The notes under the pieces: generated by a model
Seen by the model: only the letters and a program-made list of their open reading frames with translations
Databases searched by the model: none
What the model was told of the DNA's origin: nothing
Sequence record: OP617745.1
DNA: 64,000 nt
Reading direction: 5' to 3' (one strand)
In this document: piece by piece, positions 2,380-28,187 of the stretch
Numbering within the stretch: position 1 is the first letter of the stretch
Layout of the letters: every line of letters starts with the position of its first letter
Made by a program: the position numbers and the translations under genes

Positions 2380-3007
2380 AAAAAGTGATTTAGTTCACGG
2401 ATTTGGTATAAATGATATACCTAGAGATTCAAAATTAGATAGTGATTATTATAGATGTTATGGTATATGGGTTGGATTTTTGCGTAGATGTTATAGTAAT
2501 AATAGATCTCTAAAGAATATTTCATATACAAATACTGTTGTATGTGACGAGTGGAAATACTATTCAAATTTCAAAATATGGTATTATAATAATTACATAG
2601 AAGGTTATCAAATAGATAAAGATGTAATTGGTGGTACATTAGATATATATTCACCAGAAACGTGTGCTTTCATACCTAACTTGATTAATAGCTGTATTAT
2701 TGATGGTAATAGAAAAGATAAGAGTACGCCAATTGGTGTTTCATTATCTATATATAAAAACAATGTCAAGTACAGAACCTGTATAACAAAATATGGTAAA
2801 CAATTAAAAAATTTCGGTTTATATGATAATCCGTATGATGCACATAAAATTTGGCAAATTGAAAAACGTAATTATCTTTTAGAATTAATTGATAAGTACA
2901 GTAATGATGTGGTACCAGAAGTCATTCAAGGATTACAACGACGAGTTGATATTTTGAATAATGATATTTTAAATGGAATAGAGACAAAAACAATAAGTAA
3001 AGTATAA
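2363..3007 (+). CDS. HNH-family homing endonuclease-like protein
   Basis: Phage HNH-like pattern RRCY...VCDEW..YSNF..W...IDKD...YSPETCAFIP..IN; paralogue of 4062-4739. Confidence 0.75.
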   Translation: MRKGSKKSDLVHGFGINDIPRDSKLDSDYYRCYGIWVGFLRRCYSNNRSLKNISYTNTVVCDEWKYYSNFKIWYYNNYIEGYQIDKDVIGGTLDIYSPETCAFIPNLINSCIIDGNRKDKSTPIGVSLSIYKNNVKYRTCITKYGKQLKNFGLYDNPYDAHKIWQIEKRNYLLELIDKYSNDVVPEVIQGLQRRVDILNNDILNGIETKTISKV

Positions 3008-3539: not shown

Positions 3540-4090
3540 ATAAATGTATAATTACTTTTGGTAGAATAAATCCAATTCATTTAGGTCATGGGATTTTATT
3601 CAATAAAGTACAAGATATTAGTACTGAATTAAATGCAGATTTTCGAATTTATCTCAGTACTACACAAGATCCAAAGAAAAATCCACTTCCACCTAATCTA
3701 AAACAATATTACACTTCAAATTTTTATCCAAACATTAAAGATGTATTGAGTACTGAAAGTAATGTAATTAATATTATGCAAGATTTGGATTCTCAGTACA
3801 GTGATATTATTTTTGTTTGTGGATCAGATCGAATAAATTCCTTTAAAAAAGCACTTGACAGTGCCAATGGAAAATTATATAATTTCGATTCAATAGAAGT
3901 AATTCAGGCTGGGATTGAAAGAGAATGTAGCAAATATAGTAGTACTGCAATGCGTTCATATGCACTTGGTGGCGATTATAAATCTTTCAGTACCTTTTTA
4001 CCTGGCAAAGATGTTTATTTAAAAGAACAACTATTTGAAGACGTACAGAGATACATGAGAGATGGGTATAATGGTAGCAAAAGGAAGTAA
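3536..4090 (+). CDS. Cytidylyltransferase-like (HxGH) nucleotidyltransferase
   Basis: TFGRINPIHLGH, VCGSDR, SSTAMR motifs. Confidence 0.8.
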   Translation: MNKCIITFGRINPIHLGHGILFNKVQDISTELNADFRIYLSTTQDPKKNPLPPNLKQYYTSNFYPNIKDVLSTESNVINIMQDLDSQYSDIIFVCGSDRINSFKKALDSANGKLYNFDSIEVIQAGIERECSKYSSTAMRSYALGGDYKSFSTFLPGKDVYLKEQLFEDVQRYMRDGYNGSKRK

Positions 4091-4739
4091 AAAAGGAGAT
4101 CTGGTGTATGGAATAGGTATTAATGACGTATATGGTGATTGTATAAGAACTAGTGAATTTATAATTGTTTATAGTGCATGGAAAGGTATGTTACAAAGAT
4201 GCTATTCTCCTATATGGTTAGAAAAACATCCTAGTTATATTGGGACTAAAGTATGTGATGAATGGAAATATTATTCCAATTACAAGAGTTGGCATTTAAA
4301 CAATTACATTGAAGGATATGAATTGGATAAAGATATTATTGATGGAAAATCTAAAATTTATTCACCATATACATGCTCGTTCGTACCTCCATTAATTAAT
4401 ACATGTATATTGGATGGTGGTAATACTAGCTATTCTTCTCCATATCCACTGGGTGTTTCTTATCATAAGAAAGCGAAACAAATGAAAAATGAACGTTCAC
4501 GCCCATATGAAACTAATATAACTCTTTATGGTAAAAGAAAAAACTTAGGTTCATTTAAAACACCAGAAGAAGCACATAAAGCATGGCAATTTACAAAACG
4601 TGATTATTTATTGGAATTGATTAATAAGTACTGTAATGATGTAGTACCAGAAGTAATTCAAGGGCTTCAACGACGTGTTGATATTCTCAATTATGATATT
4701 AAAAATAGCAGAGAAACCAAATCGCTGAGTAAAGTATAA
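4062..4739 (+). CDS. HNH-family homing endonuclease-like protein
   Basis: QRCYS...VCDEWKYYSNY...LDKD...YSPYTCSFVP..IN; C-terminus near-identical to 2363-3007. Confidence 0.75.
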   Translation: MGIMVAKGSKKGDLVYGIGINDVYGDCIRTSEFIIVYSAWKGMLQRCYSPIWLEKHPSYIGTKVCDEWKYYSNYKSWHLNNYIEGYELDKDIIDGKSKIYSPYTCSFVPPLINTCILDGGNTSYSSPYPLGVSYHKKAKQMKNERSRPYETNITLYGKRKNLGSFKTPEEAHKAWQFTKRDYLLELINKYCNDVVPEVIQGLQRRVDILNYDIKNSRETKSLSKV

Positions 4740-4793: not shown

Positions 4794-5084
4794 ATGGTAT
4801 TATTCAACATAGCAGCATTACATTGGGATAATAATGAAAAAACTGGATTTCGTCAAATCTCTGTTACTTATGAAGGTAAACAAATCATAAGTATTATCTC
4901 TAATAAAACCCTTGGGATATGGGGTTCTCGAATAGTACCTCTTGGATTCAGTTATAATAAAGATGAAGTACAAATGTTAAGTACTTTATATAAGAATATA
5001 GAGTGTATTATGAATTTTCTTGAACAAGATATAGTACTTAATCAGGATGCAGTACTTGACTTTTTGGAAAATATTAATGTATGA
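4794..5084 (+). CDS. Hypothetical protein
   Basis: ORF; ATG at 4794 follows GAGGG. Confidence 0.65.
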   Translation: MVLFNIAALHWDNNEKTGFRQISVTYEGKQIISIISNKTLGIWGSRIVPLGFSYNKDEVQMLSTLYKNIECIMNFLEQDIVLNQDAVLDFLENINV

Positions 5085-5337
5085 TATAACTTGTGTCTTT
5101 CAAGAAGCATGGCTGTCAGGCACTTATGATTTAGAAGTGATCGATGGTATTAAAATGTGGATTATAAAGAGTTCGACGCCTTTTAGTCCAGTAATAAAAA
5201 GTAAATTAAAATATGCAAGTGATGAATATTTAGATTGTACAATAAAAACAAAAAACATTAACTATAATGGAAAAATAATTTTTCTTGGTAATGAACATTT
5301 GTTTTATATTTTTAAAGAGGAATACAATGAATACTAA
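5077..5337 (+). CDS. Hypothetical protein
   Basis: ORF overlapping the previous stop; probable ATG at 5077. Confidence 0.6.
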   Translation: MYDITCVFQEAWLSGTYDLEVIDGIKMWIIKSSTPFSPVIKSKLKYASDEYLDCTIKTKNINYNGKIIFLGNEHLFYIFKEEYNEY

Positions 5338-5932
5338 TAGTAATACTTATTTTCGTTATCTACGTCTGGGTCTATCTCTTCGTCCAGTACGTGGTTATTG
5401 TGATGATCTGGAAGATTTTGAATACGCGTGGGCTGTTCATTGTGAAAATGTACAATACGTACTTAATGATTTTGGTGAATTTGAAAAAGATAATGATTCA
5501 ACTTCAATGATGAATGCGATTGACAATCTTGATTGTATTGCTAATTCAGATCGTCATGAAACAGTACTTGCAGTACAGAAATATATTGAAAGCAATCTGA
5601 GCAAGCCAGTTTGGTGCATGGTAAGCACTGAAGAACAACTTGGAATTACTTTTGGTACTGAAGATGGTTATGTTGCACAATTAATTATGGATTTCAGTAC
5701 TGAAGAAAAATTCATTTCTTATCGTGATAAAATTTATCAAGCACTATTACGCAGTGGTATCAGTGAAGATCAAGTACCAGAAATTGCACCAATGAAAGAT
5801 TTCTTCCTTATCCCAAGTGATGAAAAATATGATGCAATGTTTTATAAAATGAATGTGCCAGGTGTTATTGTTGAACATTTTGACGATGATAATACTGAGT
5901 GGTTGGACTTGGGTGATGACGAAGACTATTGA
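5327..5932 (+). CDS. Hypothetical acidic protein
   Basis: ATG at 5327 after GAGG; highly-expressed-style codons; acidic C-terminus. Confidence 0.75.
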   Translation: MNTNSNTYFRYLRLGLSLRPVRGYCDDLEDFEYAWAVHCENVQYVLNDFGEFEKDNDSTSMMNAIDNLDCIANSDRHETVLAVQKYIESNLSKPVWCMVSTEEQLGITFGTEDGYVAQLIMDFSTEEKFISYRDKIYQALLRSGISEDQVPEIAPMKDFFLIPSDEKYDAMFYKMNVPGVIVEHFDDDNTEWLDLGDDEDY

Positions 5933-6080
5933 TGATTTTTATTGCTTTATAGAAAATACAACTGCACTACTGGAATATTTTGATAATACTCCTTATCATA
6001 AAATAATAGTGCAGGTTTATGATGATCTTTTTTATGAATATGGTAACTATTTTGATTGGTTCGCACATCTTAGTACATAA
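5916..6080 (+). CDS. Small hypothetical protein
   Basis: In-frame ATG at 5916 within track ORF 5853-6080; fills a gap in the operon. Confidence 0.4.
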   Translation: MTKTIDDFYCFIENTTALLEYFDNTPYHKIIVQVYDDLFYEYGNYFDWFAHLST

Positions 6081-6345
6081 CTTTTTATTACTTCTTAATA
6101 ACAAAATACAAATTAACTATATTTTCAGAGATGATCCTTTATATAAAAATGAAATCTCTGATATATACAAGAATATGACAACTGAAATCTATCATTATTA
6201 CATGAATAAAAAATTCAAGTGCTATTATATCAAAGGAATTGTAAAACCAGCAAGGTTATATATATGCACTAAAAATGATATGGTGAGTAAAGTTATAGAT
6301 ATCAAAGATTTAAAAGATGAGGTTCTTAGGGATGAATGGTACTGA
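6019..6345 (+). CDS. Small hypothetical protein, ~90-aa array family (start uncertain)
   Basis: Helical N-terminus then MNKKFK...GIV beta-rich C-terminus ending IDIKDL. Confidence 0.6.
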   Translation: MMIFFMNMVTILIGSHILVHNFLLLLNNKIQINYIFRDDPLYKNEISDIYKNMTTEIYHYYMNKKFKCYYIKGIVKPARLYICTKNDMVSKVIDIKDLKDEVLRDEWY

Positions 6346-6649
6346 ATGTGTGAAAAAGAAAATAGAATTTATACAAATGACGTGTAAGGTAATTTTCGAT
6401 TTAGTACACAATACCAATATACCAACCTTGTTCAAAGAAGAATTATTATTAAGTACTGAGGTTATTTTTGAAGAATATTTCAGTACTAAATTGTATTTAA
6501 ATTATGGTAATTTTTACAAAATTCACGGCTTTACTATAAGTAGTTCAAATGGAAGTGTTTATATTTTAACTTCATTTGGTCATTTCGAATTAACAGAAAG
6601 TACTGTAAAAAATTTTTATGAATATCCATCAAAAATGAGAGTAAATTAA
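6332..6649 (+). CDS. Small hypothetical protein, possible array family
   Basis: ORF overlapping both neighbours; similar helix+beta layout. Confidence 0.6.
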   Translation: MNGTECVKKKIEFIQMTCKVIFDLVHNTNIPTLFKEELLLSTEVIFEEYFSTKLYLNYGNFYKIHGFTISSSNGSVYILTSFGHFELTESTVKNFYEYPSKMRVN

Positions 6650-6849
6650 TGAAAAAATGTTCGTGTTGTGGATCTACTCAAATTGCACGTTTTCGATTAG
6701 ATTCTGATTGGGCCGTTGGTTGTGGTGATTTCTACCCAGTTAATGATGATTCAGAATATACTGAAGAACAACTGAAAGATTTTGATAATAGTTGGAGACC
6801 AGATTTTGAGTTTCTATATTGTTTGAATTGTAATTCGGTACAGGAATGA
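6649..6849 (+). CDS. Small zinc-ribbon-like protein
   Basis: CSCCGS at the N-terminus and CLNC at the C-terminus. Confidence 0.7.
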   Translation: MKKCSCCGSTQIARFRLDSDWAVGCGDFYPVNDDSEYTEEQLKDFDNSWRPDFEFLYCLNCNSVQE

Positions 6850-7115
6850 TTAAACCACATTATCATTGTATTCACTACTTAGGAACGACTATTTGTAATG
6901 AATTTACGAAAAATAAACATCATCAATTCAGTACTGTAATACGTGATATATTGTTATACATTGAAAAAGAATTAACATTATTTTATAAAAATACCGTATA
7001 TACTTATTGTAATAAAAAGTACAAAATACTCAATTTATCATTTGATGATAGAGGATTTTTATATGTAATGAGTACTGAATATTATACTCATTTGGTTCTG
7101 CATACGGATTTATAA
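6846..7115 (+). CDS. Small hypothetical protein, array family
   Basis: ATGA overlap; IRDILLYIEKELTLFY resembles IRSILDNIEDELNVLY of the next ORF. Confidence 0.65.
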   Translation: MIKPHYHCIHYLGTTICNEFTKNKHHQFSTVIRDILLYIEKELTLFYKNTVYTYCNKKYKILNLSFDDRGFLYVMSTEYYTHLVLHTDL

Positions 7116-7384
7116 TGAACAAACAATTATTATACTGTAAAGTGGTTTATTACTTGACTAATTCAGTACTGAATATGAATAACACACATTTTAACTATTC
7201 ACTCTGTATTAGAAGTATTCTAGATAACATAGAAGATGAACTAAATGTGTTATATACTGGAAAAACATTCACAAAAAACAATATCCGACACAAATGTAAT
7301 GGTATTGTTATAACATATGGTCGTATATTTGCTTTATACGGTATACGTTACACTTGCTATTTTCATAGGGCCAAATTTAAATGA
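7115..7384 (+). CDS. Small hypothetical protein, array family
   Basis: TAATG overlap; similar to the previous ORF. Confidence 0.65.
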   Translation: MNKQLLYCKVVYYLTNSVLNMNNTHFNYSLCIRSILDNIEDELNVLYTGKTFTKNNIRHKCNGIVITYGRIFALYGIRYTCYFHRAKFK

Positions 7385-7998
7385 AAACAGATTATTCAAA
7401 ACTAAGAACAAAACTTTATGGAATTATAGAGGGACTATCTCTAATCGATCCAAAGTACTATGAATTACGTCGTTTACTTGCATTCGCCGAACAATATCAT
7501 TGTAATACACGCAAAGATGGTTCTGAAGAATTCTCTCATCAATTACAAATGCTTGGATTGGCTCTTACGCTTCATGAATCGATGTGTAAGCCGTTTGAAG
7601 TATACATGGCAATTGTATCTCATGATTTAATCGAAGACTATCCAGAAGCTTCTGAAACGCTTGAGATGTTATTCCCTGATGTAATCCAATATAGTCGCAA
7701 ACTGGCTAAATTTAAAGATTCAAATACTGATGAAGATTCGTACTATGGATACTTTAATCAGCTTGCTAATTGTCAAGTATGTTCAATTGTAAAACTCGTA
7801 GATAGAGTGCACAATTTGAGTACCGCACCTGGTGTATTCAGTACTGAAAAAATTATAAGTTATTGTGATGAAACTGATAAGTATTTCTTTGATATGATAA
7901 AAAAATCCAAAGTTATGTTCAATCAACGTTCAGCTTATGAAGTTCTAAAATTCATGTTGAATACTGAAGTCAGTACTATCAGGAATTTATTAAAATGA
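7381..7998 (+). CDS. HD-domain hydrolase of the RelA/SpoT hydrolase (small alarmone hydrolase/Mesh1-like) type
   Basis: AEQYH...RKDGS..F.H, HDLIEDY, VKLVDRVHNL motifs. Confidence 0.8.
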   Translation: MKTDYSKLRTKLYGIIEGLSLIDPKYYELRRLLAFAEQYHCNTRKDGSEEFSHQLQMLGLALTLHESMCKPFEVYMAIVSHDLIEDYPEASETLEMLFPDVIQYSRKLAKFKDSNTDEDSYYGYFNQLANCQVCSIVKLVDRVHNLSTAPGVFSTEKIISYCDETDKYFFDMIKKSKVMFNQRSAYEVLKFMLNTEVSTIRNLLK

Positions 7999-8201
7999 AA
8001 ATAGTTTTAGAATTTGCATTTATTATTTTTGGTTTCATTTGGTTCACTGCTATTTCAATTTTTGCTGGATATCTCATTATTAAACCGGATATGTTGATTT
8101 TCTACTGGATTTTGACTTTAATTGCATTCATCAGTGTTGTCTATTTGTCTTATAAACTGGTATATCTATATGCAGATGAAATCAAAAAATATAACACTTA
8201 G
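7995..8201 (+). CDS. Small membrane protein (two TM helices)
   Basis: Two long hydrophobic stretches. Confidence 0.65.
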   Translation: MKIVLEFAFIIFGFIWFTAISIFAGYLIIKPDMLIFYWILTLIAFISVVYLSYKLVYLYADEIKKYNT

Positions 8202-8234
8202 TTGGTTTTATGTTGAAAAGATTTAAAATCGATA

Positions 8235-8264
8235 TTGAATAAACATTTCTCCTTGTGATATAAT
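8235..8264 (+). promoter_or_regulatory. Sigma70-like promoter
   Basis: TTGAAT-N18-TATAAT with an extended -10 TG. Confidence 0.55.
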
Positions 8265-8308
8265 ACTATATGTAAAAGGATTTTACATAAGCACAAGGAG
8301 AGTCAAAG

Positions 8309-9037
8309 ATGATAGATAATTTAGCATTTGCATCCGAAATGGCTAATCAGTTGAACATGAGTAATTTTCAGAGTCTTACACCAGTGATGGCGGAATATGC
8401 TGTTGCTCATGCCACCTGTGGTGAACAAGTTGGATCAGCAAATTTATTAGCTGATGTATTCAGTACTGTACAAAGTACCCAATACAGTGTTAAAATGTAT
8501 AGGGATAAGTTTGTACAGTTGTATATGCTTGATGTAATAAAAGAAGAACCAGAATGGACTGATTTTATTATTGAACGTAGGATTAGTGGTGTTTCTAATC
8601 CAGATAAAGATGCAGTACAAGTATTTGATGAAATACTTCAAGATGTATATAGTAATGAACAAAAAAGTCTAAATCAATACAATGTACGTTCTACCAAGAC
8701 AGTGCTCGTGGGATTTGATGAAGATGAAGAATATTACTATTTTCGTTGTACTGAAGTAGATTTTAAATACGAAACTCCCAGTACAGTTAAAGTTAAAGAA
8801 TTTACTGAAAAGAGTAAAAACTTCAAAAAACATTCTTCTAATATTAGTAATATAGTTGGTTATAATAAAGATGGTATTGACATATATCAATGGGTACACC
8901 CAAATAACTCAACTTATACCAGATGTTTAAAGAAACGTTATAATTTAAAACAAGAAGAATCATTTTATTTTAAGATAAAGAAGCATTCCTATCAACGACC
9001 TGATGAATCAGTGTTACTTGGTATGATTTACTTCTGA
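8309..9037 (+). CDS. Hypothetical protein (242 aa)
   Basis: AAGGAG RBS, own promoter and terminator. Confidence 0.8.
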   Translation: MIDNLAFASEMANQLNMSNFQSLTPVMAEYAVAHATCGEQVGSANLLADVFSTVQSTQYSVKMYRDKFVQLYMLDVIKEEPEWTDFIIERRISGVSNPDKDAVQVFDEILQDVYSNEQKSLNQYNVRSTKTVLVGFDEDEEYYYFRCTEVDFKYETPSTVKVKEFTEKSKNFKKHSSNISNIVGYNKDGIDIYQWVHPNNSTYTRCLKKRYNLKQEESFYFKIKKHSYQRPDESVLLGMIYF

Positions 9038-9045
9038 TTTTAGTC

Positions 9046-9079
9046 GTCCAGTACAATATAAGTACTGGACATTTTTTTT
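9046..9079 (+). terminator. Rho-independent terminator
   Basis: GTCCAGTAC-aatataa-GTACTGGAC then T8. Confidence 0.8.
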
Positions 9080-9090
9080 AAGGTAAAAAA

Positions 9091-9369
9091 TTGAATATAT
9101 TACAAAAAGTCAATTTATTTGGAAAAGCGTATGTAAATGCTTTTTATGATATTGATAAACGTTATGAATATGCTAATTTTTTAAATAGAGAAATTGAATT
9201 TAGTAGAATGAATAGGTTATTGTCTGGTAAACGAGTAACTATTATTTTTAATGGTTATCAGGGATATATTAATCAAATTCGCCATCTAGATAAGAAAATT
9301 TTTGCATTCGTTTATACTAATAATGGAAATTTATTGGTTAATGTATCTTTTTTGGAATTGATTGAATGA
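9091..9369 (+). CDS. Small hypothetical protein, array family
   Basis: Helix + LLSGKRV...GYINQI...VNVSFLELIE. Confidence 0.65.
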   Translation: MNILQKVNLFGKAYVNAFYDIDKRYEYANFLNREIEFSRMNRLLSGKRVTIIFNGYQGYINQIRHLDKKIFAFVYTNNGNLLVNVSFLELIE

Positions 9370-9650
9370 AATTAATAGACCAAGTTATTCTTTATAAGAA
9401 AGTATTTGATTATATGGAAGATTTTCTTGATGGTACACATTATGAATGTTGCATTTATGTTACATGGAAAAAGAATGTAATGGAAATAGAAAAAGCTACT
9501 ATTTCTAAAATAGTTCGAGTAAAAAGCCTTGATATTATCGGTACTATCATTGAACTTAATATAGGAAGATATTTTGCATTTTTTGGTGTAAAAGTACCTG
9601 AAAACGATTTTGCTCTTATAATTTCATTAGATGATATTGAGTTTCTTTGA
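9366..9650 (+). CDS. Small hypothetical protein, array family
   Basis: Helix + KIVRV...GTIIEL...ISLDDIEFL. Confidence 0.7.
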   Translation: MKLIDQVILYKKVFDYMEDFLDGTHYECCIYVTWKKNVMEIEKATISKIVRVKSLDIIGTIIELNIGRYFAFFGVKVPENDFALIISLDDIEFL

Positions 9651-9679
9651 GTTTTATCTATTTGGTAATATAAAATATT

Positions 9680-9991
9680 ATGGATAAATTACACAAAGCA
9701 GTATTATTTTTAAAAGCATATAGCTATGAGTACTTACAAAGTCATGGAAAATGGAATGGTAGTTATAATGATTTGTATTCATCTGTTTTTCTTAATGAAG
9801 TAAATCTTGTGATATCAGAAGTACAAAAATTATATGAAAGAAAACTTGTGCATACGAGATTTGGTATTGGAATTATTATTAGTATATTTTGCTTCACACA
9901 CGGTTCCTTTTCAGTTACAATCAAAATAATAGTAGAAGGCAAACCACAAACAATAGTATTAAAATTAAGTGAGATATATCTGGATGAATGA
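9680..9991 (+). CDS. Small hypothetical protein, array family
   Basis: Helix + LYERKLV...GIIISI...LKLSEIYLDE. Confidence 0.7.
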   Translation: MDKLHKAVLFLKAYSYEYLQSHGKWNGSYNDLYSSVFLNEVNLVISEVQKLYERKLVHTRFGIGIIISIFCFTHGSFSVTIKIIVEGKPQTIVLKLSEIYLDE

Positions 9992-10256
9992 ACATTTTAA
10001 TAGAATACAATTAATCACCCAACTTCTACAAATGGTTGATGACACATTTGATGAATTAAAAAATAATCTTATGAATAAGAAAATCAAATGTAAGGTATAT
10101 ATGAATGATGGTGATTATTTCGATATGCGTGAAGTTGAAGTAACTGGAATTGTTACTAATATTACTTTGTATGAATATGATCTAACTATTACAGTGAAAA
10201 TCGACGAAGGTCGTGAATATTACGTTTGTAATCAACATATTGAGGTGGTTGAATGA
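9984..10256 (+). CDS. Small hypothetical protein, array family
   Basis: Helix + LMNKKI...GIVTNI...HIEVVE. Confidence 0.7.
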   Translation: MNEHFNRIQLITQLLQMVDDTFDELKNNLMNKKIKCKVYMNDGDYFDMREVEVTGIVTNITLYEYDLTITVKIDEGREYYVCNQHIEVVE

Positions 10257-11398
10257 GTTTAGTAGAAATCTATAATGATTTAATGAATTTAGTACAAAAT
10301 AATGAAGCATTTGAATATAAAGATCAGCGTTCAATTGGCGGTGGTTTGTATAGAATCTTTTCTTATCGAATGGCCTCATATACTGATTTCTGTGAACCTA
10401 ATGCCAAAGAAACACGAGGTTCAATGTGGGAAATCAATGAAGATGGTACTATGATTCGTTGTGCAGCACGTACTATGAATAAATTTTTTAACGCATATGA
10501 AAACCCATTCACAATGTTTGATAAAAATATGCTTAGTACTGAAATTGAAGTGGCGATGGATAAACGAGACGGTTCTATTATCAGTACTTTCAGAGATAAT
10601 GACGGAATTATTCGTTGTAAATCTCACACTTCTCTATCTTCAGAACACGCAATTAATAGTAATGCTATCATGCGTCCTGGTTCTAGTTTATATCAATACG
10701 TAGAAGAAGCTGAACTTCAACAATATACCGTGAACCTCGAATATACTTCACCTGAATATCGTATTGTATTGCCATATCAGAGCGAGAAACTGACTGTATT
10801 GAACGTTCGTCATCGAATCACTGGTGAACTACTGTGTGGTGAAAAACTGCGTCAGAAGTTTCCTATGCTCGCTATGCGTAGCACTAATATTATAAATGGT
10901 CAGAACATTGCCAGTAATTTTCCAATGCGTACTACAGTACTTGAAACGGTGGAAGCAGTAAAAGGAATGCGAGACATTGAAGGATTTGTGGCAGTACTGA
11001 AAGATGGTACAATGTTTAAAATTAAAACAGATTGGTACTGTGCTTTGCATTTTAATAAGGATAGTATTAATGTTGATTCTAGACTTTATGAATCAGTGCT
11101 ACAAGGTGCAAGTGATGATTTAAGGCAAATGTTCTCTAATGATCAGTATTGTCTTGATAAGATTAAAAGGATGGAAGATTTAGTATTCAGTACTTATAAT
11201 TCTTTTGAAAAATTTGTTAACGATTTTTACAATGAATTTAAACATTTAGAACGCAAAGAATATGCACTAAAAGTACAGAAACTGTTACCGAAAGAATTAA
11301 ATCATCAGGGTTATGCTTTCTCTTTGTATAACAATAAACCATTTGATTTAAAGGAAAACATGATCAAATACAGCAAAGAAGTATTAAAAGATTTCTAA
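10253..11398 (+). CDS. rnlA: RNA ligase 1 (T4 Rnl1/gp63-like)
   Basis: YRIFSYRMAS, ETRG, KFFN..ENPF, motif I KRDGS, IEGFV, FKIKTDWY. Confidence 0.9.
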   Translation: MSLVEIYNDLMNLVQNNEAFEYKDQRSIGGGLYRIFSYRMASYTDFCEPNAKETRGSMWEINEDGTMIRCAARTMNKFFNAYENPFTMFDKNMLSTEIEVAMDKRDGSIISTFRDNDGIIRCKSHTSLSSEHAINSNAIMRPGSSLYQYVEEAELQQYTVNLEYTSPEYRIVLPYQSEKLTVLNVRHRITGELLCGEKLRQKFPMLAMRSTNIINGQNIASNFPMRTTVLETVEAVKGMRDIEGFVAVLKDGTMFKIKTDWYCALHFNKDSINVDSRLYESVLQGASDDLRQMFSNDQYCLDKIKRMEDLVFSTYNSFEKFVNDFYNEFKHLERKEYALKVQKLLPKELNHQGYAFSLYNNKPFDLKENMIKYSKEVLKDF

Positions 11399-11410
11399 TA
11401 AGGACACCAA

Positions 11411-11584
11411 ATGAAGAAAAGGAATTCGTGGAGTACTCCTGAAGAATATAGGAAGATTCAGTGTTATTTTGATACAATACACAAAGAAAAATCCAGTTCA
11501 GGAGTACGAAAAAACAGAAATAAAATTAATACTAAAAAGAAAGAACGTATATATTCTTTAGAACGCCATACAAGAGAAGCTTAA
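11411..11584 (+). CDS. Small basic hypothetical protein (57 aa)
   Basis: Read manually; ATG after AAGGAC; below the track length cut-off. Confidence 0.45.
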   Translation: MKKRNSWSTPEEYRKIQCYFDTIHKEKSSSGVRKNRNKINTKKKERIYSLERHTREA

Positions 11585-11597
11585 ACGGGAGATTATT

Positions 11598-11810
11598 ATG
11601 AAAGTACAAATTCAGCACAGTATTGTTCAAGACATGTCAGTGGTTAAATTTAACAATCTTCATGATTTTTTTAGATGTATTGACTTTCTCGATAATTCAT
11701 GTTTAGAATATGATATGATAAAATACAGTTCAGTTCTTGATACTGCCAGTATCAGAGTGAATGAATTGGTACTACATAAATTTAGCAAACGTTTCGGGAT
11801 TGGGAAATGA
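11598..11810 (+). CDS. Small hypothetical protein
   Basis: GGGAG RBS; ORF. Confidence 0.65.
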   Translation: MKVQIQHSIVQDMSVVKFNNLHDFFRCIDFLDNSCLEYDMIKYSSVLDTASIRVNELVLHKFSKRFGIGK

Positions 11811-12073
11811 TTATGTATGAAAAATTTATATCAACTAAAGAAATGCTTCAAAGGTTGATTGACGATAATGACAAAGAAATTATAAGGTATTACACTGGAA
11901 AAAAAGTAAAAATTTCTGCTGAACTCCTTGAGGAACTCGAATTGGAATCAGAGGATGATACTGTATGGACTATATATGCAGTCACTGTATTCGATGATTG
12001 TCTATTTTTTGATGTAGAACACGGTGATGATGATTTACAAGATTTAGAAATAGATGATCTTATATTTCTTTGA
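11807..12073 (+). CDS. Small hypothetical protein, array family
   Basis: YYTGKKVKI...TIYAV...LEIDDLIFL. Confidence 0.7.
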   Translation: MIMYEKFISTKEMLQRLIDDNDKEIIRYYTGKKVKISAELLEELELESEDDTVWTIYAVTVFDDCLFFDVEHGDDDLQDLEIDDLIFL

Positions 12074-12081
12074 GAATAAAA

Positions 12082-12348
12082 ATGAATACAGAACAAGCTA
12101 TTAGTACTATTGAAAATTTAAATAACACTTTAGGAATTCTTGAAAAAATTAAGTTAGATGTTGAATATCAAGTACAAAATTTATTTTTGAATAAGAAAGC
12201 ATTATTCAAGGATGGCACTGAAGGATATATTGTCGAGTTGTTTTCTGAAAATGTAAACCTACCTTATGATTTTCAATTTCTTGTTCGTTCAGAAGGTGGA
12301 TACTTAGATTATATATATGAGGCAAAAGATTTTGTGCAATTCATCTAA
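12082..12348 (+). CDS. Small hypothetical protein, array family
   Basis: Helix + LFLNKKA...GYIVEL...KDFVQFI. Confidence 0.7.
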   Translation: MNTEQAISTIENLNNTLGILEKIKLDVEYQVQNLFLNKKALFKDGTEGYIVELFSENVNLPYDFQFLVRSEGGYLDYIYEAKDFVQFI

Positions 12349-12574
12349 AATAATTAAGCAGTACGAACAATACGTAACTATGCTTGAAACCATGAATGCG
12401 GAATTAGAAGTTTCTGCATTTAATTCTGTACATAGATACTTTATAAATCGTCCAGTACTTTATAAAAATAATGAATATAGAATTCAAAATGTATTCAGAG
12501 ATGAAGAAAGTACTATTATTTTTCTACTGTATAATAATATATATGTGGATTATACTGAAGTAACGTTTATTTAA
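12317..12574 (+). CDS. Small hypothetical protein, array family
   Basis: Helix + YFINRPV...YRIQNV...VDYTEVTFI. Confidence 0.65.
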   Translation: MRQKILCNSSKIIKQYEQYVTMLETMNAELEVSAFNSVHRYFINRPVLYKNNEYRIQNVFRDEESTIIFLLYNNIYVDYTEVTFI

Positions 12575-12585
12575 AGGACATAATA

Positions 12586-13530
12586 ATGCCAACAATCACA
12601 TTAACAGTTGGACTTCCGGGGTGTGGTAAGACTACATGGGCTGTTGAAGAAGTTCGAAGATCTAAAAGTAAAACGGTAAATATCAACCGTGATGATATGC
12701 GAGAAAGTATGGCTGGTTCTCATGAGAATTATAAATTCAAAGATGATAATGAGAAGTACATAGACGCTATGCAAATTGCAGCAGCAGATACAGCAGCAAA
12801 GAATAAGTGGAATATTATTATTTCAGATACCAACCTAAAGTTATCTATCCGAAAGAAATGGAAAGATTGGGCTAAAGCCAATGGCTATGATTACAAAGAA
12901 AAGAATTTCTTTGATGACTTTGTAGCAAAAAGTACTTCAGGTGCAGATGTTCATCAGTACTTTAAAATTAAAGAATTTGTAAAACAATGCAAAGACTATA
13001 ATTTACTTCGCTACAAATCAGTACCTGAATCGGTAATTGATACAATGGCTGATTCTTATTTGTATAGTACTATGCCAGTTCCTTCTATTCAGAAAGATTC
13101 GATGTATGATTTTAGTACTGAATATATCATTGTTGATATTGATGGTACTTTAGCACATAGGGGAAATCGCAACCCATATGATGAAAGTACTGTACTGGAA
13201 GATACACCAGATCTTGAAGTTATTCGTTCAGTACTGGCTGAAGTGAACCATCATAAACGAAAGGTTATTATCATGAGTGGTCGTCATGAAACTTGTGCAA
13301 AAGACACTCGTTTGTGGCTCCATGAAAATGGAGTTCCATTTGAATATCTTTTCATGCGTTCAGAAAATGACAATCGCCCTGATGATGTGGTAAAATATGA
13401 ATTGTACATGAAACATGTTGCACCATATTACAATGTAGTTAAAGTTTATGACGACCGCCAAAGCGTCTGTCAAATGTGGCGTAAACTATTGAAATTGAAA
13501 GTATTTCAGGTTGATGTTGGAAATTTTTGA
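12586..13530 (+). CDS. pseT: Polynucleotide 5'-kinase/3'-phosphatase (T4 PseT-like)
   Basis: P-loop GLPGCGKTT, NRDDMR; HAD domain DIDGT, SGR, DDR. Confidence 0.92.
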   Translation: MPTITLTVGLPGCGKTTWAVEEVRRSKSKTVNINRDDMRESMAGSHENYKFKDDNEKYIDAMQIAAADTAAKNKWNIIISDTNLKLSIRKKWKDWAKANGYDYKEKNFFDDFVAKSTSGADVHQYFKIKEFVKQCKDYNLLRYKSVPESVIDTMADSYLYSTMPVPSIQKDSMYDFSTEYIIVDIDGTLAHRGNRNPYDESTVLEDTPDLEVIRSVLAEVNHHKRKVIIMSGRHETCAKDTRLWLHENGVPFEYLFMRSENDNRPDDVVKYELYMKHVAPYYNVVKVYDDRQSVCQMWRKLLKLKVFQVDVGNF

Positions 13531-13630
13531 TGATTATTGAAGGGGAACACTTGATCCCCTTCTCTTCTTTTGATAAAATAGAACTACAAATAGAAAAATA
13601 ATCAAGACTCGGTACTTGGAATAAGAAAAA

Positions 13631-13897
13631 ATGAAACAATTTTATGAACACTGGAAGATGTTATTTAATAGTACAGAGTCGTTGTACTGGAATAGATATT
13701 ATTCCGGTTGTATCAATGAATTGTATAATCATTTTTTATATGAAGCTACTTCATCATTAAAAGGACAAACAGTTCAACACAATGTCTACGGTGAGTGCAG
13801 AATTGCAAGAGTTTATTCTTTTTATGATGATGAACTATTTTGTACAACATATTCGAATTTATACAGAATGGATGTAAAATTGCGAGATTTAATTTAA
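13631..13897 (+). CDS. Small hypothetical protein, array family
   Basis: Helix + LKGQTVQH..YG.CRI..V...VKLRDLI. Confidence 0.7.
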   Translation: MKQFYEHWKMLFNSTESLYWNRYYSGCINELYNHFLYEATSSLKGQTVQHNVYGECRIARVYSFYDDELFCTTYSNLYRMDVKLRDLI

Positions 13898-14199
13898 TGA
13901 ATTTATCAGAATGTATAAAATTGACTAAATTTTTAGATTCAGTGAATGATCGTATGTTTGAGGAATTTTGTGATAATACTGAATATTTAAATATAGTAAT
14001 GTGTATTTTTCATAAACATTTAAATGGGTATATTGATGAACTGAATAAAAAACTAAAAAACAGAGAACTTTTCGTGTATGGTTTAGGTTATTGTGTAATT
14101 TATGATGTTTATCGTTCGATACACGGTGAATTAAAATGTACAGTAACATTTGAAAATGAATATCATAATGTCTATATGAAATACTCAAAACTTGTATGA
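13897..14199 (+). CDS. Small hypothetical protein, array family
   Basis: TAATG overlap; ELNKKLKNREL...G.CVI.DV. Confidence 0.7.
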   Translation: MNLSECIKLTKFLDSVNDRMFEEFCDNTEYLNIVMCIFHKHLNGYIDELNKKLKNRELFVYGLGYCVIYDVYRSIHGELKCTVTFENEYHNVYMKYSKLV

Positions 14200-14489
14200 A
14201 TAAAATAAAATCACTTGATATTGCTTATACCCTATTTTATATCAAAGATCATATAGATGACTCTTTTTACAAAGTTATAGTCGATTATACAGAGAATTTA
14301 ATACAAGAACTTAACACAATACTTATTGGTAGTGACTGTATTGTTAAACCATCTGGTGTTGAATTCAAAGCTACAATTGATTCAATATTGTTTAGTTCTA
14401 TTTCTGGTTTAGTATATAAAGTGACTGAAAATACTAAATCATTTTATAGTTATCGTTATGTTAATCCATTAAAAATTGAGTTCTTATGA
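14196..14489 (+). CDS. Small hypothetical protein, array family
   Basis: ELNTILIGSDC...ATIDSI...VNPLKIEFL. Confidence 0.7.
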   Translation: MNKIKSLDIAYTLFYIKDHIDDSFYKVIVDYTENLIQELNTILIGSDCIVKPSGVEFKATIDSILFSSISGLVYKVTENTKSFYSYRYVNPLKIEFL

Positions 14490-14761
14490 AATCACTCAAA
14501 GAAGATATTAATTTCAAATTATTATCAGTACTGAAAGAACATACTTTTAGTAACCCACTTTGTCAAGATTTACTTAATTCAATATATTATAATAAAATTA
14601 CCAAATATGTTGATAATAAATGTTATTTTATTCATGACAAAGAAAAAGTATGCTCAACCATAAATGGGTTTTATGTATCCAAAAACGGTGATGTTTTATG
14701 TTATTTGTATCATAATAAAACATACAATTTTATAGAATTAAAGGATGTATATATTGAATAG
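14486..14761 (+). CDS. Small hypothetical protein, array family
   Basis: Helix + YVDNKC...STINGF...IELKDVYIE. Confidence 0.7.
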   Translation: MKSLKEDINFKLLSVLKEHTFSNPLCQDLLNSIYYNKITKYVDNKCYFIHDKEKVCSTINGFYVSKNGDVLCYLYHNKTYNFIELKDVYIE

Positions 14762-15041
14762 TATTCAGGATGATATAGAAAGGAGAATATACTTCATTGT
14801 AGTGTGTTATAAAAGAAAATACACTACGCAGTACTATAAAATTTCTGGAATGCAAGATTAAATTTAGAAATTAAAAACATATTATACTATCAGAGGATAT
14901 TGTGATGGATTCTTATTTAGATGAATTGATTATTGATTTACTAGTTTCTTCAGTACTATCACGACGTGGTGAAAAAAAATCACGCAAATACAATAAAGAA
15001 AAATTTGATGATTATTTGCGTGATTTTCTGGGAAGATTCAG

Positions 15042-15227
15042 ATGAATCAACATCAAGATTACAAATATCATAAGCTGCTTGATGAATTCACAGAAAATAT
15101 AAAAATGTATGGGGTGCTAAAACAGATAGAAACAAAACATAAAACAGGAGACTATTTCAATAAAAGATGTAATTCAATTATAAAGAGATTTGTTACAGAA
15201 AGTAATTTTATTATTAAAGGAAAATAA
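15042..15227 (+). CDS. Small hypothetical protein
   Basis: Short ORF within the operon. Confidence 0.5.
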   Translation: MNQHQDYKYHKLLDEFTENIKMYGVLKQIETKHKTGDYFNKRCNSIIKRFVTESNFIIKGK

Positions 15228-15434
15228 TTTATGGATATTGATGATACGTATTTGTATAATCTTGAATTAGTGAGAGTTGGTGTATTGTTGACCACTTATT
15301 ATACTAACTACAAATGTATTAATTCTGTTATAAATTCTATACTTGATTCATGGGTATATTATAGTTCCAGATTACTATAATGATTAATTTAAATTTAAGT
15401 TACAAAACACATAACTTCGAAAGTATAAAATTTG

Positions 15435-15734
15435 ATGAATAAAATAAATGACGCATATCATACTTGGGAAATGCTTTTTGACTTAACTGATGATTTTTAT
15501 CCAAGTAACTATTCAAATGTTTATTATGAAGTATATAAAAATTATTATTCAGAACTTAATAATTATGTCAAAGGAACTAAAGTTGAACTTATATTATTAT
15601 ATTCAGTGAGTCCTTCAAAACTAGGAACTGTTAATTCAATAAATGTGACACCATTTGGATTACACTTTGAAATAGAACTGTGCCATAATTCAGTAATAGT
15701 TTTCCGTGAATATTGTGAAATAAAAGAATGTTAA
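15435..15734 (+). CDS. Small hypothetical protein, array family
   Basis: ELNNYVKGTKV...GTVNSI. Confidence 0.7.
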   Translation: MNKINDAYHTWEMLFDLTDDFYPSNYSNVYYEVYKNYYSELNNYVKGTKVELILLYSVSPSKLGTVNSINVTPFGLHFEIELCHNSVIVFREYCEIKEC

Positions 15735-15748
15735 TATGTGGGGTTATC

Positions 15749-16009
15749 ATGAATTTAAAAACTGATATAGAATATTTCAATTTACTTATGTCATTAGTAA
15801 ATGAACAATTGGAGCACATGAATAATACTTATAAAAATACAAATGTATTAATAGATTCATATAAACAAAATTTATATGATGAAGAGGGGAGTATTTTATC
15901 ATTTGATATTTCGGATAAAGACGTAACATTAATGATAAGTGTTCAATACAGTAACAGTTGGTTTGGTCGTTTAAACTCAGAATATCATGATTTTGTGATC
16001 AAAAAATAA
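15749..16009 (+). CDS. Small hypothetical protein, array family
   Basis: MNNTYKNTNV...GSILSF. Confidence 0.65.
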   Translation: MNLKTDIEYFNLLMSLVNEQLEHMNNTYKNTNVLIDSYKQNLYDEEGSILSFDISDKDVTLMISVQYSNSWFGRLNSEYHDFVIKK

Positions 16010-16814: not shown

Positions 16815-16820
16815 TAAACA

Positions 16821-16850
16821 AAAGAAGCCCAAATAAGGGCTTCTTTTTAT
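16821..16850 (+). terminator. Rho-independent terminator
   Basis: AAAGAAGCCC-aaataa-GGGCTTCTTT then T-run. Confidence 0.85.
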
Positions 16851-16876: not shown

Positions 16877-17623
16877 ATGAGACATTATTTACAAGTAACC
16901 GTACCGGATGAGAAGGAATTATATATTGTTGGTGATATTCATGGCAATGCAAGACTGTGGGATTTAACTAAAAAAGAATTTGGAATCACTGATAATGATG
17001 TAGTATTCAGTCTAGGTGATATTGTGGATCGTGGTAAAAATAATTCCAAATTACTATTTGAATTTCTTTTTCAAGACAATCGTTATATGATTAACGGAAA
17101 TCACGAATCCATGCTCGTTGATGGATTGACTAATCGTGAATGGTATCATTGTCATATGAGTAATGGTGGAGACAAACTATACGAAGAACTTGGTCATACT
17201 GGTGTAGAATTCTTTGCTCAGTATTTAAAAGATTTACCCATGATCATAGAAATACGTTATCGTGGTATGAAAATTGGATTAGTACACGGTTGCTGTCCTT
17301 TACGTTATACAGACTGGAACGAATTTTTAACTGATAGTTCAACGTTATCTCCAAAAATTGTTGAAGAATGTATTTGGTCCAGAAATGATTTTGACTATGC
17401 AAAACAAAACAACACTTATCATTCACCAAGAATTTCCAATATTGATTATGTTATTTCAGGACATTCCCCTGTATTTGATCCACTAATTTATGGAAACCGA
17501 TGGTGGATTGATTCACAATTTAGTACTGGAGATTTGACTGTAGTACAACCAAACAGTGGAAAACTTAGATATTTTAGAAGAGAAAAGGATGCATATTCTT
17601 TTGATCGTAAACGTGGTTATTAA
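16877..17623 (+). CDS. Ser/Thr protein phosphatase family metallophosphoesterase (NinI-like)
   Basis: GDIHG, GDIVDRG, GNHE, GHSP motifs. Confidence 0.9.
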   Translation: MRHYLQVTVPDEKELYIVGDIHGNARLWDLTKKEFGITDNDVVFSLGDIVDRGKNNSKLLFEFLFQDNRYMINGNHESMLVDGLTNREWYHCHMSNGGDKLYEELGHTGVEFFAQYLKDLPMIIEIRYRGMKIGLVHGCCPLRYTDWNEFLTDSSTLSPKIVEECIWSRNDFDYAKQNNTYHSPRISNIDYVISGHSPVFDPLIYGNRWWIDSQFSTGDLTVVQPNSGKLRYFRREKDAYSFDRKRGY

Positions 17624-18744: not shown

Positions 18745-19945
18745 TAAATTATACGTAGCACGTTCATATGCTGGAACAGATAAAATAAATGGAAGTATAA
18801 TCGATGCAACAAAAGATCATACTAAAGCATATCAGGATAAAAAATCCAGAGTAGATCAACGCCACCGACATAATACACTGGCTTCACTTGAACTGGATAA
18901 TGTCCCAACAAAGGGGTTCAGCGTAGTCAAACAATATAGTTATGTCAGCCGTGAATGTTTTTTTTCTATTCATCACCCAAGAGGTTTTGAATTTAGTATT
19001 TCAGTACAAAATATGATTGATTTGATTGCTAACAATAATATCATCAATGGTTCATTTGTTGATGAAATGTACTTCGATGATAAATTACAACTAATCAACA
19101 GTAATACTGAAGCGTTTGAAAAAATGAAAAAACGCGAAGAAATCAAAGAGAAGAACAAAAATACAAAAGAAAATCTTAAATGTGGTAGTGGTTTTGTTTA
19201 TCTGAAAAATGAATTCTATTACTGTGGTAAAGTTCATGCAATTAGTGTTCATGCAAACAAAGATTATGCATTAACTGATAAAAGTCGTTCATATGATTTA
19301 GTATATGATATTGGCAAGAAACTCTATTCTTTGTGTAATGATTTGAGTAAGTACCAAATTGAACAAAGAGCACTTCTTAATACAAAAACTGATTTAGAAA
19401 CAGAAGTACAGAAAGCAAATACATATTTTCAAAGTACAGTCAAAAAAGAATATGCACCTCTTTCCGACCAAAGAGAACCAGTACTAATTCATACCAAATC
19501 ATTCAAGAAATCCGACTTACGTATTCAGTACAATGATATTTCTTATTCAGAAATGTCAAACGGTGTAAATTATTTTTGTTCTAATTTATTATACTTAGCA
19601 GAATATAATAATAACACATATAGAGTGTTCTTTGGTCTTAATAAAAACTATAAGCCAGGTGTATACCGACATTATAGTAATGATTATGATATAATCAATT
19701 CTGGTAATTTTGAGATTTACTGTGCATACCCATGTACTGTATCAGAAAATACATTAGAAATGGATGTTGACATTAATAGTCATTATTCTTTTGCTATGTG
19801 GGGTGCATATAAATCACCATTCTATCCACCATCCAAGCGTTATGACGCATATAGTACCAGTTATAAAAACAAAAAAGAATTAGTTCATCTTGAACCATCG
19901 AAAACGACGCTAAAAGTTGGTCATTATTATCTACAAGGAAAGTAA
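18731..19945 (+). CDS. Hypothetical protein (404 aa)
   Basis: Long ORF; LDNVPTKGF...HPRGFEFSISVQN recalled from large-phage hypotheticals. Confidence 0.75.
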   Translation: MSIPSKLYVARSYAGTDKINGSIIDATKDHTKAYQDKKSRVDQRHRHNTLASLELDNVPTKGFSVVKQYSYVSRECFFSIHHPRGFEFSISVQNMIDLIANNNIINGSFVDEMYFDDKLQLINSNTEAFEKMKKREEIKEKNKNTKENLKCGSGFVYLKNEFYYCGKVHAISVHANKDYALTDKSRSYDLVYDIGKKLYSLCNDLSKYQIEQRALLNTKTDLETEVQKANTYFQSTVKKEYAPLSDQREPVLIHTKSFKKSDLRIQYNDISYSEMSNGVNYFCSNLLYLAEYNNNTYRVFFGLNKNYKPGVYRHYSNDYDIINSGNFEIYCAYPCTVSENTLEMDVDINSHYSFAMWGAYKSPFYPPSKRYDAYSTSYKNKKELVHLEPSKTTLKVGHYYLQGK

Positions 19946-19948
19946 AAA

Positions 19949-21364: not shown

Positions 21365-21413
21365 AATAAAATGGAGTACTACGGAATTGTTCTCCCTATT
21401 TTCAAGGAATGAA

Positions 21414-22784: not shown

Positions 22785-22787
22785 ATG

Positions 22788-22816
22788 TTGACATTTATAA
22801 TTATCTGTTTTATAAT
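22788..22816 (+). promoter_or_regulatory. Consensus sigma70 promoter
   Basis: TTGACA-N17-TATAAT. Confidence 0.85.
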
Positions 22817-28184: not shown

Positions 28185-28187
28185 AAA

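Follow-up and report, generated by a model that had tools for sequence, protein, structure and literature searches.

The locus and its small genes

The window considered here, i.e., a stretch of 64,000 nucleotides of sequence record OP617745.1, corresponds at 100% identity to the genome of the Klebsiella phage KP13-7 (357,701 bp), window base 1 being genome base 186,001. KP13-7 is a jumbo phage of the RaK2/K64-1 type (Alcyoneusvirus). Between positions 6019 and 16009 of the window, small genes are packed on the + strand among genes for an HD-domain phosphohydrolase, RNA ligase 1 (Rnl1) and polynucleotide kinase/phosphatase (PseT). A preliminary description, made from the sequence alone, had proposed that about 18 of these small genes form one expanded, highly diverged family built on an SH3/KOW-like barrel. 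From the analysis reported here, it is very probable that one paralogous family does exist; it comprises 29 copies in KP13-7, nearly all in two arrays, and its members are predicted to combine a helical N-terminus with a five-stranded SH3-like barrel.

All 17 open reading frames (ORFs) listed in the preliminary description are present on the + strand with 85-110 residues, either at the listed starts or at in-frame starts a few codons upstream (alternative in-frame starts being 6317/6332, 9969/9984, 12070/12082, 13840/13897, 15432/15435, and 15728/15749). That list has 17 entries, not 18, and two further ORFs (15042-15227 and 5853-6080) are possible extra members. That the genes are mostly translationally coupled is roughly right because the ORF overlaps the upstream gene by 1-8 nucleotides in eight of the 17 cases and by 14-62 nucleotides in three more. 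As had been anticipated, all family genes are annotated as unrelated hypotheticals. The ORFs, designated hereafter by their start in the window, are listed below with their standing in the family. Most E-values come from a leave-one-out test, run because an iterated search can reinforce itself, in which a candidate is removed, the family profile is rebuilt from the remainder and the candidate is scored.

5853-6080, + strand: possible member, 75 residues, weak; E 0.027-0.061 near the decoy floor, E 0.5 and unrecognised in leave-one-out
6019-6345, + strand: family member, 108 residues, robust tier; leave-one-out E 9e-4, no decoy above
6332-6649, + strand: candidate, 105 residues; family profile E 12, not recognised
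6846-7115, + strand: family member, 89 residues, via its neighbour 7115 (blastp/phmmer E 1.6e-4, 35% over 52 residues)
7115-7384, + strand: family member, 89 residues, robust tier; leave-one-out E 1e-5
9091-9369, + strand: family member, 92 residues, TTG start, supported tier; leave-one-out E 0.024, ahead of decoys
9366-9650, + strand: family member, 94 residues, via 13631 and 15435 (jackhmmer from both)
9680-9991, + strand: family member, 103 residues, supported tier, variable allele; leave-one-out E 0.003, pairs with 13897
9984-10256, + strand: family member, 90 residues, directly upstream of Rnl1; leave-one-out E 0.019
11807-12073, + strand: probable family member, 88 residues; E 0.022-0.026, ahead of all decoys, inclusion threshold never reached
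12082-12348, + strand: structural relative by AlphaFold2 model, 88 residues; family profile E 2.7, no sequence link
12317-12574, + strand: candidate, 85 residues (80 in the K64-1 annotation); leave-one-out E 0.28, three decoys above
13631-13897, + strand: family member, 88 residues, robust tier; leave-one-out E 4e-5, blastp to 15435 E 4.6e-4
13897-14199, + strand: family member, 100 residues, robust tier; leave-one-out E 3e-4, pairs with 9680 and with L002_15398 of phage 121Q
14196-14489, + strand: family member, 97 residues, robust tier; leave-one-out E 1e-5
14486-14761, + strand: family member, 91 residues, robust tier; leave-one-out E 7e-5, in the strict cascade cluster
15042-15227, + strand: possible short member, 61 residues, unlisted in the preliminary description; family profile E 0.02-0.06, ahead of decoys
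15435-15734, + strand: family member, 99 residues, robust tier, most variable allele; leave-one-out E 8e-9
15749-16009, + strand: family member, 86 residues, robust tier; leave-one-out E 8e-6, leave-group-out z-score 8.1

Sequence evidence for one family

Among the candidates themselves, BLAST and phmmer link three pairs only, namely 6846/7115, 13631/15435, and 9680/13897, to which can be added the match between 9984 and gp437 of phage 121Q. No candidate but 9984 has a BLAST-level orthologue in six other phages, where the enzymes and three other small genes of the region do have them. The very low pairwise identity reported at first sight is borne out, with a median of 16% among window members. 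A local jackhmmer search assembled a subfamily composed of 9366, 9680, 13631, 13897, 15435, and three 121Q ORFs. One run started from 15435 drifted into the cytidylyltransferase and was discarded, and decoys were monitored in all later iterations. Under such a control with reversed sequences, a search cascade joined 6846, 7115, 13631, 14486, and 15435 with 121Q gp422-428, and a profile of 121Q paralogues independently matched 15435, 7115, and 6317, the latter being the upstream in-frame start of 6332.

A profile was then iterated over the 296 ORFs of 50-140 residues on both strands of KP13-7, together with the small ORFs of the other phages, a reversed decoy being supplied for each. It converged on 29 members in KP13-7 and 17 in 121Q, the latter in the syntenic region, with zero decoys under the inclusion threshold across 11 rounds and without recruiting any minus-strand ORF or any ORF of the five other phages. 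The members in KP13-7 are all on the + strand and comprise (i) 13 ORFs in the window between 6019 and 16009, (ii) 15 ORFs upstream, and (iii) one outlier at 123.0 kb of the genome. The 15 upstream members form a second array, tightly packed on the same strand at genome positions 155,585-168,295 (19585-32295 of locus L010), i.e., 24-36 kb upstream of the window array and outside the window; seven of them constitute by themselves a BLAST-level paralogue group. As such, the sequences bridging the candidates were supplied by the rest of the KP13-7 genome, not by public databases, and the expansion surmised in the preliminary description turns out, upon this hidden Markov model search of the genome, to be larger than could be seen in the window.

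In the leave-one-out test, 12 of the 17 candidates scored ahead of all decoys, namely 15435, 15749, 14196, 7115, 13631, 14486, 13897, and 6019 (E 8e-9 to 9e-4), followed by 9680, 9984, 11807, and 9091 (E 0.003 to 0.024); the remaining five, i.e., 6846, 9366, 6332, 12082, and 12317, were unrecognised. Of these five, 6846 belongs to the cascade cluster and, once removed, escapes the large profile (E 0.34), as does 9366 (E 0.61), the leave-group-out score of which exceeds those of all 23 controls, i.e., the other small ORFs of the window. Weaker hints were obtained for 6332 (z-scores of 3.8-4.6 in pairwise comparisons with two members from 121Q; hhalign score of 13.8, the controls reaching at most 10.7) and for 12317 (hhalign score of 13.1, exceeding the controls; weak similarity to 12082 with a z-score of 2.8). 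When aligned by hhalign to the family alignment, 11807 (score of 16.9 against the same maximum of 10.7), 6332, 12317, and 9091 outscored all 23 window controls and all reversed sequences, which was not the case for 12082. As for the other recognised members, 7115 aligned by hhalign to subfamily A (E 9e-4, 46 columns), 15435 was matched by a profile of 121Q gp422-425, 6019 was recruited by the whole-genome iteration, and 9091 joined that iteration only at round 7 and was excluded in a smaller run. ORF 9984 and 121Q gp437 are orthologous by position (z-score 7.9, 26/83 residues identical; phmmer E 1e-4 to L002_11696) and 15042-15227 has an orthologue in 121Q as well (L002_15222). An argument from positional orthology for 11807, 12082, and 12317 was dropped, no pairwise signal being found with the positional 121Q genes L002_13652 and L002_13913. 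Concerning 6019, the N-terminus is strongly hydrophobic over about 25 residues and the counterpart in RaK2 is interrupted by one in-frame stop, so that the real start may lie further downstream.

The specificity of the family profile was assessed against the 23 other small ORFs of the window, none of which was matched, and by profile-profile comparison with 18 small-ORF orthologue clusters of the phages CBB, Munch, Kae01, Kaldavass, and XbC2, where the probability was <0.4% for each. Besides providing a specificity control, the latter result limits the family to RaK2-like and 121Q-like phages. The layout first noticed by eye is thus shared beyond chance by most of the candidates, as judged from the 12 of 17 recognised when left out, and the conserved columns correspond to the motifs described for it. 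These columns include a Tyr (81%), an Ile (74%), a second Tyr (64%), a Phe (55%), two Gly (53% and 51%), and a near-C-terminal Asp (41%); many family columns are >=90% hydrophobic and the conserved positions mostly form a hydrophobic core together with a Tyr and the two Gly. No conserved polar constellation appears and catalysis is therefore not suggested. None of the members has a signal peptide. The isoelectric points (pI) of the candidates range from 4.1 to 9.5, which indicates that their surfaces differ. As an observation in its own right, 11807-12073 has a pI of 4.1, a net charge of about -17 and long Asp/Glu runs; it recalls DNA-mimic proteins, as a resemblance only.

Predicted fold

For 12082, AlphaFold2 gave from the single sequence a model with a predicted local distance difference test (pLDDT) value of 88, which consists of a helix (residues 3-35) and five strands (39-42, 47-55, 64-69, 76-80, and 84-87 by DSSP) with a helical turn ahead of the last one. 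For 9366, modelled with an alignment of paralogues (pLDDT 66), two helices (3-18 and 27-45) precede five strands. These two models, out of 17 candidates, have in common a helix-then-five-strand architecture; the five strands form the bent barrel of the SH3-like fold in the 12082 model and are arranged similarly in 9366. The small beta-barrel (SBB) fold is defined by five or six short strands in a closed bent barrel of ~50-60 residues (bioRxiv 10.1101/140376). When the models were compared with the PDB using Foldseek, the matches, which extend over the C-terminal 50-57 residues, were uniformly SH3-like small barrels, with probabilities of 0.98-1.0, root-mean-square deviations of 1.8-2.8 Å and target-normalised template-modelling (TM) scores up to 0.74. 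Neighbours comprise the KOW domain of eS4 (1.8 Å), the Tudor domains of 53BP1 (2.0-2.5 Å) and PHF1, and R67 DHFR (target-normalised TM 0.65-0.70), and further Hfq/Sm, Rof/YaeO, PetP, and HspQ. On account of these matches, the SH3/KOW-like barrel guessed after a helical N-terminus is supported at the level of the fold class.

Within a viral structure library, the 12082 model retrieved its own orthologue, a RaK2 protein of 90 residues and, from the 121Q-like phages slurp01 and PBECO4, further proteins. It also matched an 80-residue protein of BFVD (TM 0.67/0.72) whose accession belongs to the series of the 12082 orthologue; judging by its length only, this protein is probably the product of the neighbouring 12317. 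Like the SBB superfold at large, i.e., KOW, Tudor/chromo, Sm/Hfq, R67 DHFR, and NdhS/PetP, the KP13-7 proteins would have a five-stranded bent barrel of ~50-55 residues with a turn before the last strand, but they differ by a helical N-terminal extension of 35-45 residues and by the lack of sequence membership in Pfam, NCBIfam or the PDB. Two neighbours of the 12082 model, namely Rof/YaeO, which binds Rho, and HspQ, a specificity factor of Lon, are single small barrels that bind a host protein; these matches are weak (E 0.08-0.12, TM ~0.4-0.5) and devoid of sequence similarity, and provide an analogy for the mode of action only.

Enzyme backbone and genomic setting

The entire 10 kb of the array is covered at 97-98% identity in RaK2, K64-1, Muenster, RCIP0023, and other Alcyoneusvirus genomes. 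The GC content is 25-34%, and genes lie on the + strand to ~48 kb of the window. The small ORFs are interleaved with, and flank, the three enzyme genes named in the preliminary description, of which Rnl1 and PseT are firmly assigned by Pfam and the HD protein weakly. The features surrounding the family genes are the following:

7381-7998, + strand: HD-domain phosphohydrolase, 205 residues (weak Pfam HD_4/HD, under the curated cut-off)
9046-9070, + strand: terminator-like hairpin between transcription units (consensus scan only)
10253-11398, + strand: Rnl1 (Pfam RNA_lig_T4_1 and T4_Rnl1_C)
12586-13530, + strand: PseT, polynucleotide kinase/phosphatase (Pfam HAD_PNKP 1e-43 and AAA_33)
13539-13562, + strand: terminator-like hairpin directly past PseT (consensus scan only)
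16820-16847, no strand: palindromic terminator-like hairpin at the end of the array (consensus scan only)
16877-17623: metallophosphatase (Pfam)

A PTH2-like hydrolase was also identified by Pfam near the array. The order of the enzyme backbone, i.e., Dam, cytidylyltransferase, HD, Rnl1, PseT, Ser/Thr phosphatase, hydrolase, and DNA ligase, is kept in 121Q, CBB, Munch, fENko-Kae01, Kaldavass, and XbC2, the Rnl1 of which are 60-64% identical. The HD protein has orthologues in five other phages and the CBB copy is annotated HD. Its top Pfam match, under the curated cut-off, is HD_4 (E 0.006), a RelA/SpoT-type hydrolase domain; from this match, a small alarmone-hydrolase-like role is conceivable. 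As predicted by the consensus scan, the three terminator-like hairpins split the array into three units. A scan for sigma-70 promoters returned fewer matches than shuffled sequences and is uninformative in such AT-rich DNA; Rfam, tRNA, and DNA-repeat scans of the region revealed no RNA gene and no nucleotide-level repeats coinciding with the paralogues.

The array also contains small genes that do not belong to the family, at 6649-6849, 11411-11584, and 11598-11810. One of them encodes 66 residues with two Cys-x-x-Cys pairs and is TFIIS-like in the K64-1 annotation. Two others, of 57 and 70 residues, are kept in six of six other phages, 47/70 residues of the longer one being identical in 121Q, a conservation across phages that contrasts with the fast-diverging family.

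Divergence and selection

As a group, the candidates have a ratio of nonsynonymous to synonymous polymorphism (pN/pS) of 0.19 against K64-1, 0.35 against RaK2, and 0.29 against the metagenomic variant L017, to be compared with 0.10, 0.06, and 0.13, respectively, for the neighbouring genes. It follows that the candidates are coding and constrained, though 2-6 times less than the enzymes. All 17 frames are open in K64-1, RaK2, and L017 save one in-frame stop each in the 5' overlaps of two genes. Gene content, gene order, and product lengths are identical in the nine sequenced genomes and in L017, where no copy-number variation was seen. Two genes stand out, namely 9680, with a pN/pS of 0.58-0.70 and a protein 87% identical in L017, and 15435, with a pN/pS of 0.76-0.97 against RaK2 and L017 and a protein 81% identical in L017, the flanks being 97-99% identical in both cases. 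These two loci are allelic hotspots, which could reflect recombinational exchange of alleles or local diversifying selection.

Across genera, 9984 and 121Q gp437 are the sole orthologous pair still detectable; they agree in 26 of 83 residues, whereas the adjacent Rnl1 is 64% identical. The qualification of fast-diversifying given in the preliminary description is thus appropriate across genera, where the family diverges far faster than the enzymes, but not within the genus, where purifying selection and a fixed gene content prevail and neither continuing changes in copy number nor general positive selection are apparent.

Database searches and known systems

A five-member profile searched against 1.84 billion representatives retrieved only the clusters of the members themselves (Alcyoneusvirus variants), and when 11 sequences were searched by word index against 5.8 billion proteins, only Alcyoneusvirus orthologues were returned. 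A scan of IMG/VR with Rnl1 for phages of intermediate divergence returned RaK2 itself and one 62%-identical relative. In Pfam, the 17 candidates have no match to KOW, Tudor, LSM, or SH3 families but marginal ones to DUF1653 (E 0.026) and MSSS-SH3 (E 0.095), for one member each. NCBIfam and PDB sequence searches returned nothing significant; nor did PADLOC for defence systems, where three single-member matches (E 0.003-0.013) were regarded as noise. PHROGs gave five weak single-member matches, none with an assigned function. With respect to the literature, the RaK2 paper says no more than that ~10% of the gene products of this phage are paralogues, paralogues are not brought up in a 2026 genome paper on Asteriusvirus, and a survey of jumbo phages (Iyer et al.) covers other expansions, e.g., a zinc ribbon present in ~35 copies in Bacillus phage G, but not the KP13-7 family. 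Absent from family databases and from these three publications, the family is undescribed, within a known fold class and a known type of genomic setting.

This setting has parallels. Like the zinc ribbon of phage G, the KP13-7 family consists of dozens of diverged copies of a small domain in one giant phage, mostly without database homologues, but the fold is different, i.e., a helix followed by an SH3-like barrel. Like the plastic regions of small early genes in T4-type phages, the locus presents a conserved enzyme backbone with slots filled by small, same-strand and often overlapping ORFs that differ by genus; the slots of T4-type phages are however occupied by unrelated ORFans, whereas those of KP13-7 mostly belong to one family.

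Proposed explanation and its alternatives

The array is part of an expansion, specific to this lineage, of one family of small proteins that the jumbo phages of the RaK2 type (Alcyoneusvirus) and of the 121Q type (Asteriusvirus) inherited from their common ancestor. The scaffold is a protein of ~85-105 residues, in which one or two predicted N-terminal helices (~35-45 residues) are followed by a five-stranded SH3-like barrel ending at the stop codon. Old duplications have generated ~29 copies in two packed same-strand arrays, since diverged to ~16% identity. The products would be soluble, non-virion proteins co-expressed with RNA-repair and DNA-modification genes; with different surfaces on the same scaffold, each would bind a different partner, host protein or nucleic acid, for the purpose of host takeover or counter-defence. 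To the explanation as a whole, i.e., binding modules for host takeover or counter-defence with a partner of their own, we give an even chance of being right. As a possible role, the preliminary description had named host-protein binders or anti-defence decoys. The mechanism of a binding repertoire, considered for itself, is put forward tentatively and falls somewhat short of that. In its most complete form, the ~29 members would be a library of binders with a fixed scaffold and varied surfaces, each neutralising or redirecting a different host factor or defence sensor, and the library would be maintained as a block in RaK2-like and 121Q-like phages with other families in sister genera; such a reading is doubtful at this stage.

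Several elements weigh against this explanation. Regarding the family, 6332, 12082, and 12317 are without significant sequence link, 6846 and 9366 are each attached by a single link, and the late recruits 9091, 9984, and 6019 hinge on transitive links and on the threshold. Regarding the fold, two structures were predicted, one of them at low confidence from a paralogue-only alignment, and Foldseek against the PDB returned no significant E-value (best 0.011, none <=0.001), so that the fold class is drawn from the uniformity of the matches. Regarding the function, the binding role is read from fold and context, and a gene content fixed within the genus is unexpected for an actively cycling counter-defence repertoire.

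The main rival to the proposed explanation is a role as Sm/KOW/Tudor-type nucleic-acid binders, possibly ring-forming, which would act on RNA with the repair enzymes or on transcription. Sm/Hfq proteins likewise place a helix ahead of five strands; Hfq, archaeal Sm, and Gemin6/7 are among the matches of the full-length structure, NusG-KOW and ribosomal KOW domains are found among the structural neighbours too, and the genes are interleaved with Rnl1 and PseT. The hallmarks of Sm/Hfq proteins are a ring oligomer paired through beta4-beta5 and the Sm1/Sm2 motifs. In the KP13-7 family, the helix has 33-43 residues and is 3-4 times longer than the short Sm helix, and there is no Pfam match to LSM, KOW, or any other barrel family. 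Small barrels do frequently oligomerise and bind RNA (bioRxiv 10.1101/140376), but acidic proteins (pI 4.1-6.3) account for nine of the 17 candidates and basic ones for only four, a poor fit to uniform nucleic-acid binding, and the second array, 24-36 kb upstream, does not adjoin RNA-repair genes. Weakened by the mostly acidic members and by an array away from RNA enzymes, this role appears unlikely.

Alternatively, the small ORFs would not form a single family but a few small paralogue groups mixed with unrelated ORFans, considering that a pattern of helix then strands is common among small AT-rich phage proteins. It could be pointed out that BLAST links no more than three pairs, that 6332, 12082, and 12317 are beyond any profile, that 6846 and 9366 are lost when left out, and that the drift of jackhmmer into the cytidylyltransferase illustrates how iteration over a small database can mislead. 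Yet reversed decoys never passed inclusion, 12 candidates are recognised by profiles excluding them, genome controls of the same size and composition as well as the 18 clusters of other genera are unmatched, the 121Q paralogue profile independently reaches three of the ORFs, and 12082, though without sequence link, has the same predicted architecture. Taken together, this makes the absence of a family very unlikely.

In another view, old duplications would have left behind copies that can for the most part be dispensed with and now do little. It would agree with a constraint 2-6 times below that of neighbours and with the different small ORFs filling the same slots in other genera; on the contrary, the group pN/pS of 0.19-0.35 is well under 1, the 17 frames are open in K64-1, RaK2, and L017, bar two 5'-overlap stops, and ten genomes agree in gene order and lengths, which leaves this view very little likelihood. 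Many small proteins of unknown function are associated with the virions of jumbo phages, and some small-barrel proteins decorate capsids. A function as internal, decoration, assembly, or DNA-packaging accessory proteins is nonetheless very unlikely, for both arrays are surrounded by genes of nucleotide and RNA metabolism and have the tail-spike genes of the window on the other strand, and in RaK2, a close relative used here in place of KP13-7 itself, all virion proteins (found by mass spectrometry of particles or predicted) map to two other clusters, one of ~82 kb and one of ~20 kb for the tail fibres, and none to gp448-479 (PMC3622015).

Other features of the genome

Apart from the family, the palindromic 12-mer TTCAGTACTGAA, counted with <=1 mismatch, has 22 sites in the window against 0.23 expected, e.g., at 5693, 7162, 7837, 34864, 38723, and 40846, and ~132 sites in the 358-kb genome, the densest part being 86-186 kb. 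It is enriched too in the 121Q, CBB, Munch, Kaldavass, and XbC2 loci. The sites fall within ORFs, in varied frames, as well as in intergenic DNA, and two copies are located just upstream of a promoter-like site at ~38,700-38,790. TTCAGTACTGAA may be a binding or modification site of a phage protein.

Near the start of the window, two paralogous genes encoding ~215-225 residues (2363-3007 and 4062-4739) flank the Dam-cytidylyltransferase pair and are related to a CBB gene annotated as HNH endonuclease; no Pfam match was found for the 4062 gene. Both genes are missing at these positions in K64-1, which suggests homing-endonuclease insertions specific to KP13-7. Beside the endonuclease-like insert, two small genes at 4794-5337 are 64-68% identical in DNA to L017, with flanks of 97-99%, and megablast finds no counterpart for them in K64-1 or RaK2, as if this segment had been replaced locally.

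Other sets of related genes were encountered, namely (i) a BLAST-level group of 18 paralogues of 194-667 residues spread genome-wide, found in the window near 21414, 24443, 31484, and 46408, and (ii) a separate group of eight proteins of 277-1320 residues at genome 233.8-255 kb (window 47.8-64 kb and beyond), which are likely tail spikes or fibres as in RaK2-like phages. In addition, ~25 consecutive same-strand genes of 135-200 residues occupy 34425-47494 of locus L010 (genome 170.4-183.5 kb), and arrays of similar-sized genes exist upstream of Rnl1 in Munch and fENko-Kae01. As only small subsets of the L010 run group by BLAST, it may be another very diverged expansion.

Implications

With this family, ~5% of the genes of a 358-kb phage collapse into one group with a recognisable fold. 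This makes it simpler to annotate the RaK2-like and 121Q-like phages, several of which are being examined for therapy against Klebsiella and E. coli, and it provides a defined, compact set of proteins whose structures and expression can be studied. Should the members indeed bind different host factors, the family would represent a natural case of one small scaffold giving rise to many specificities.

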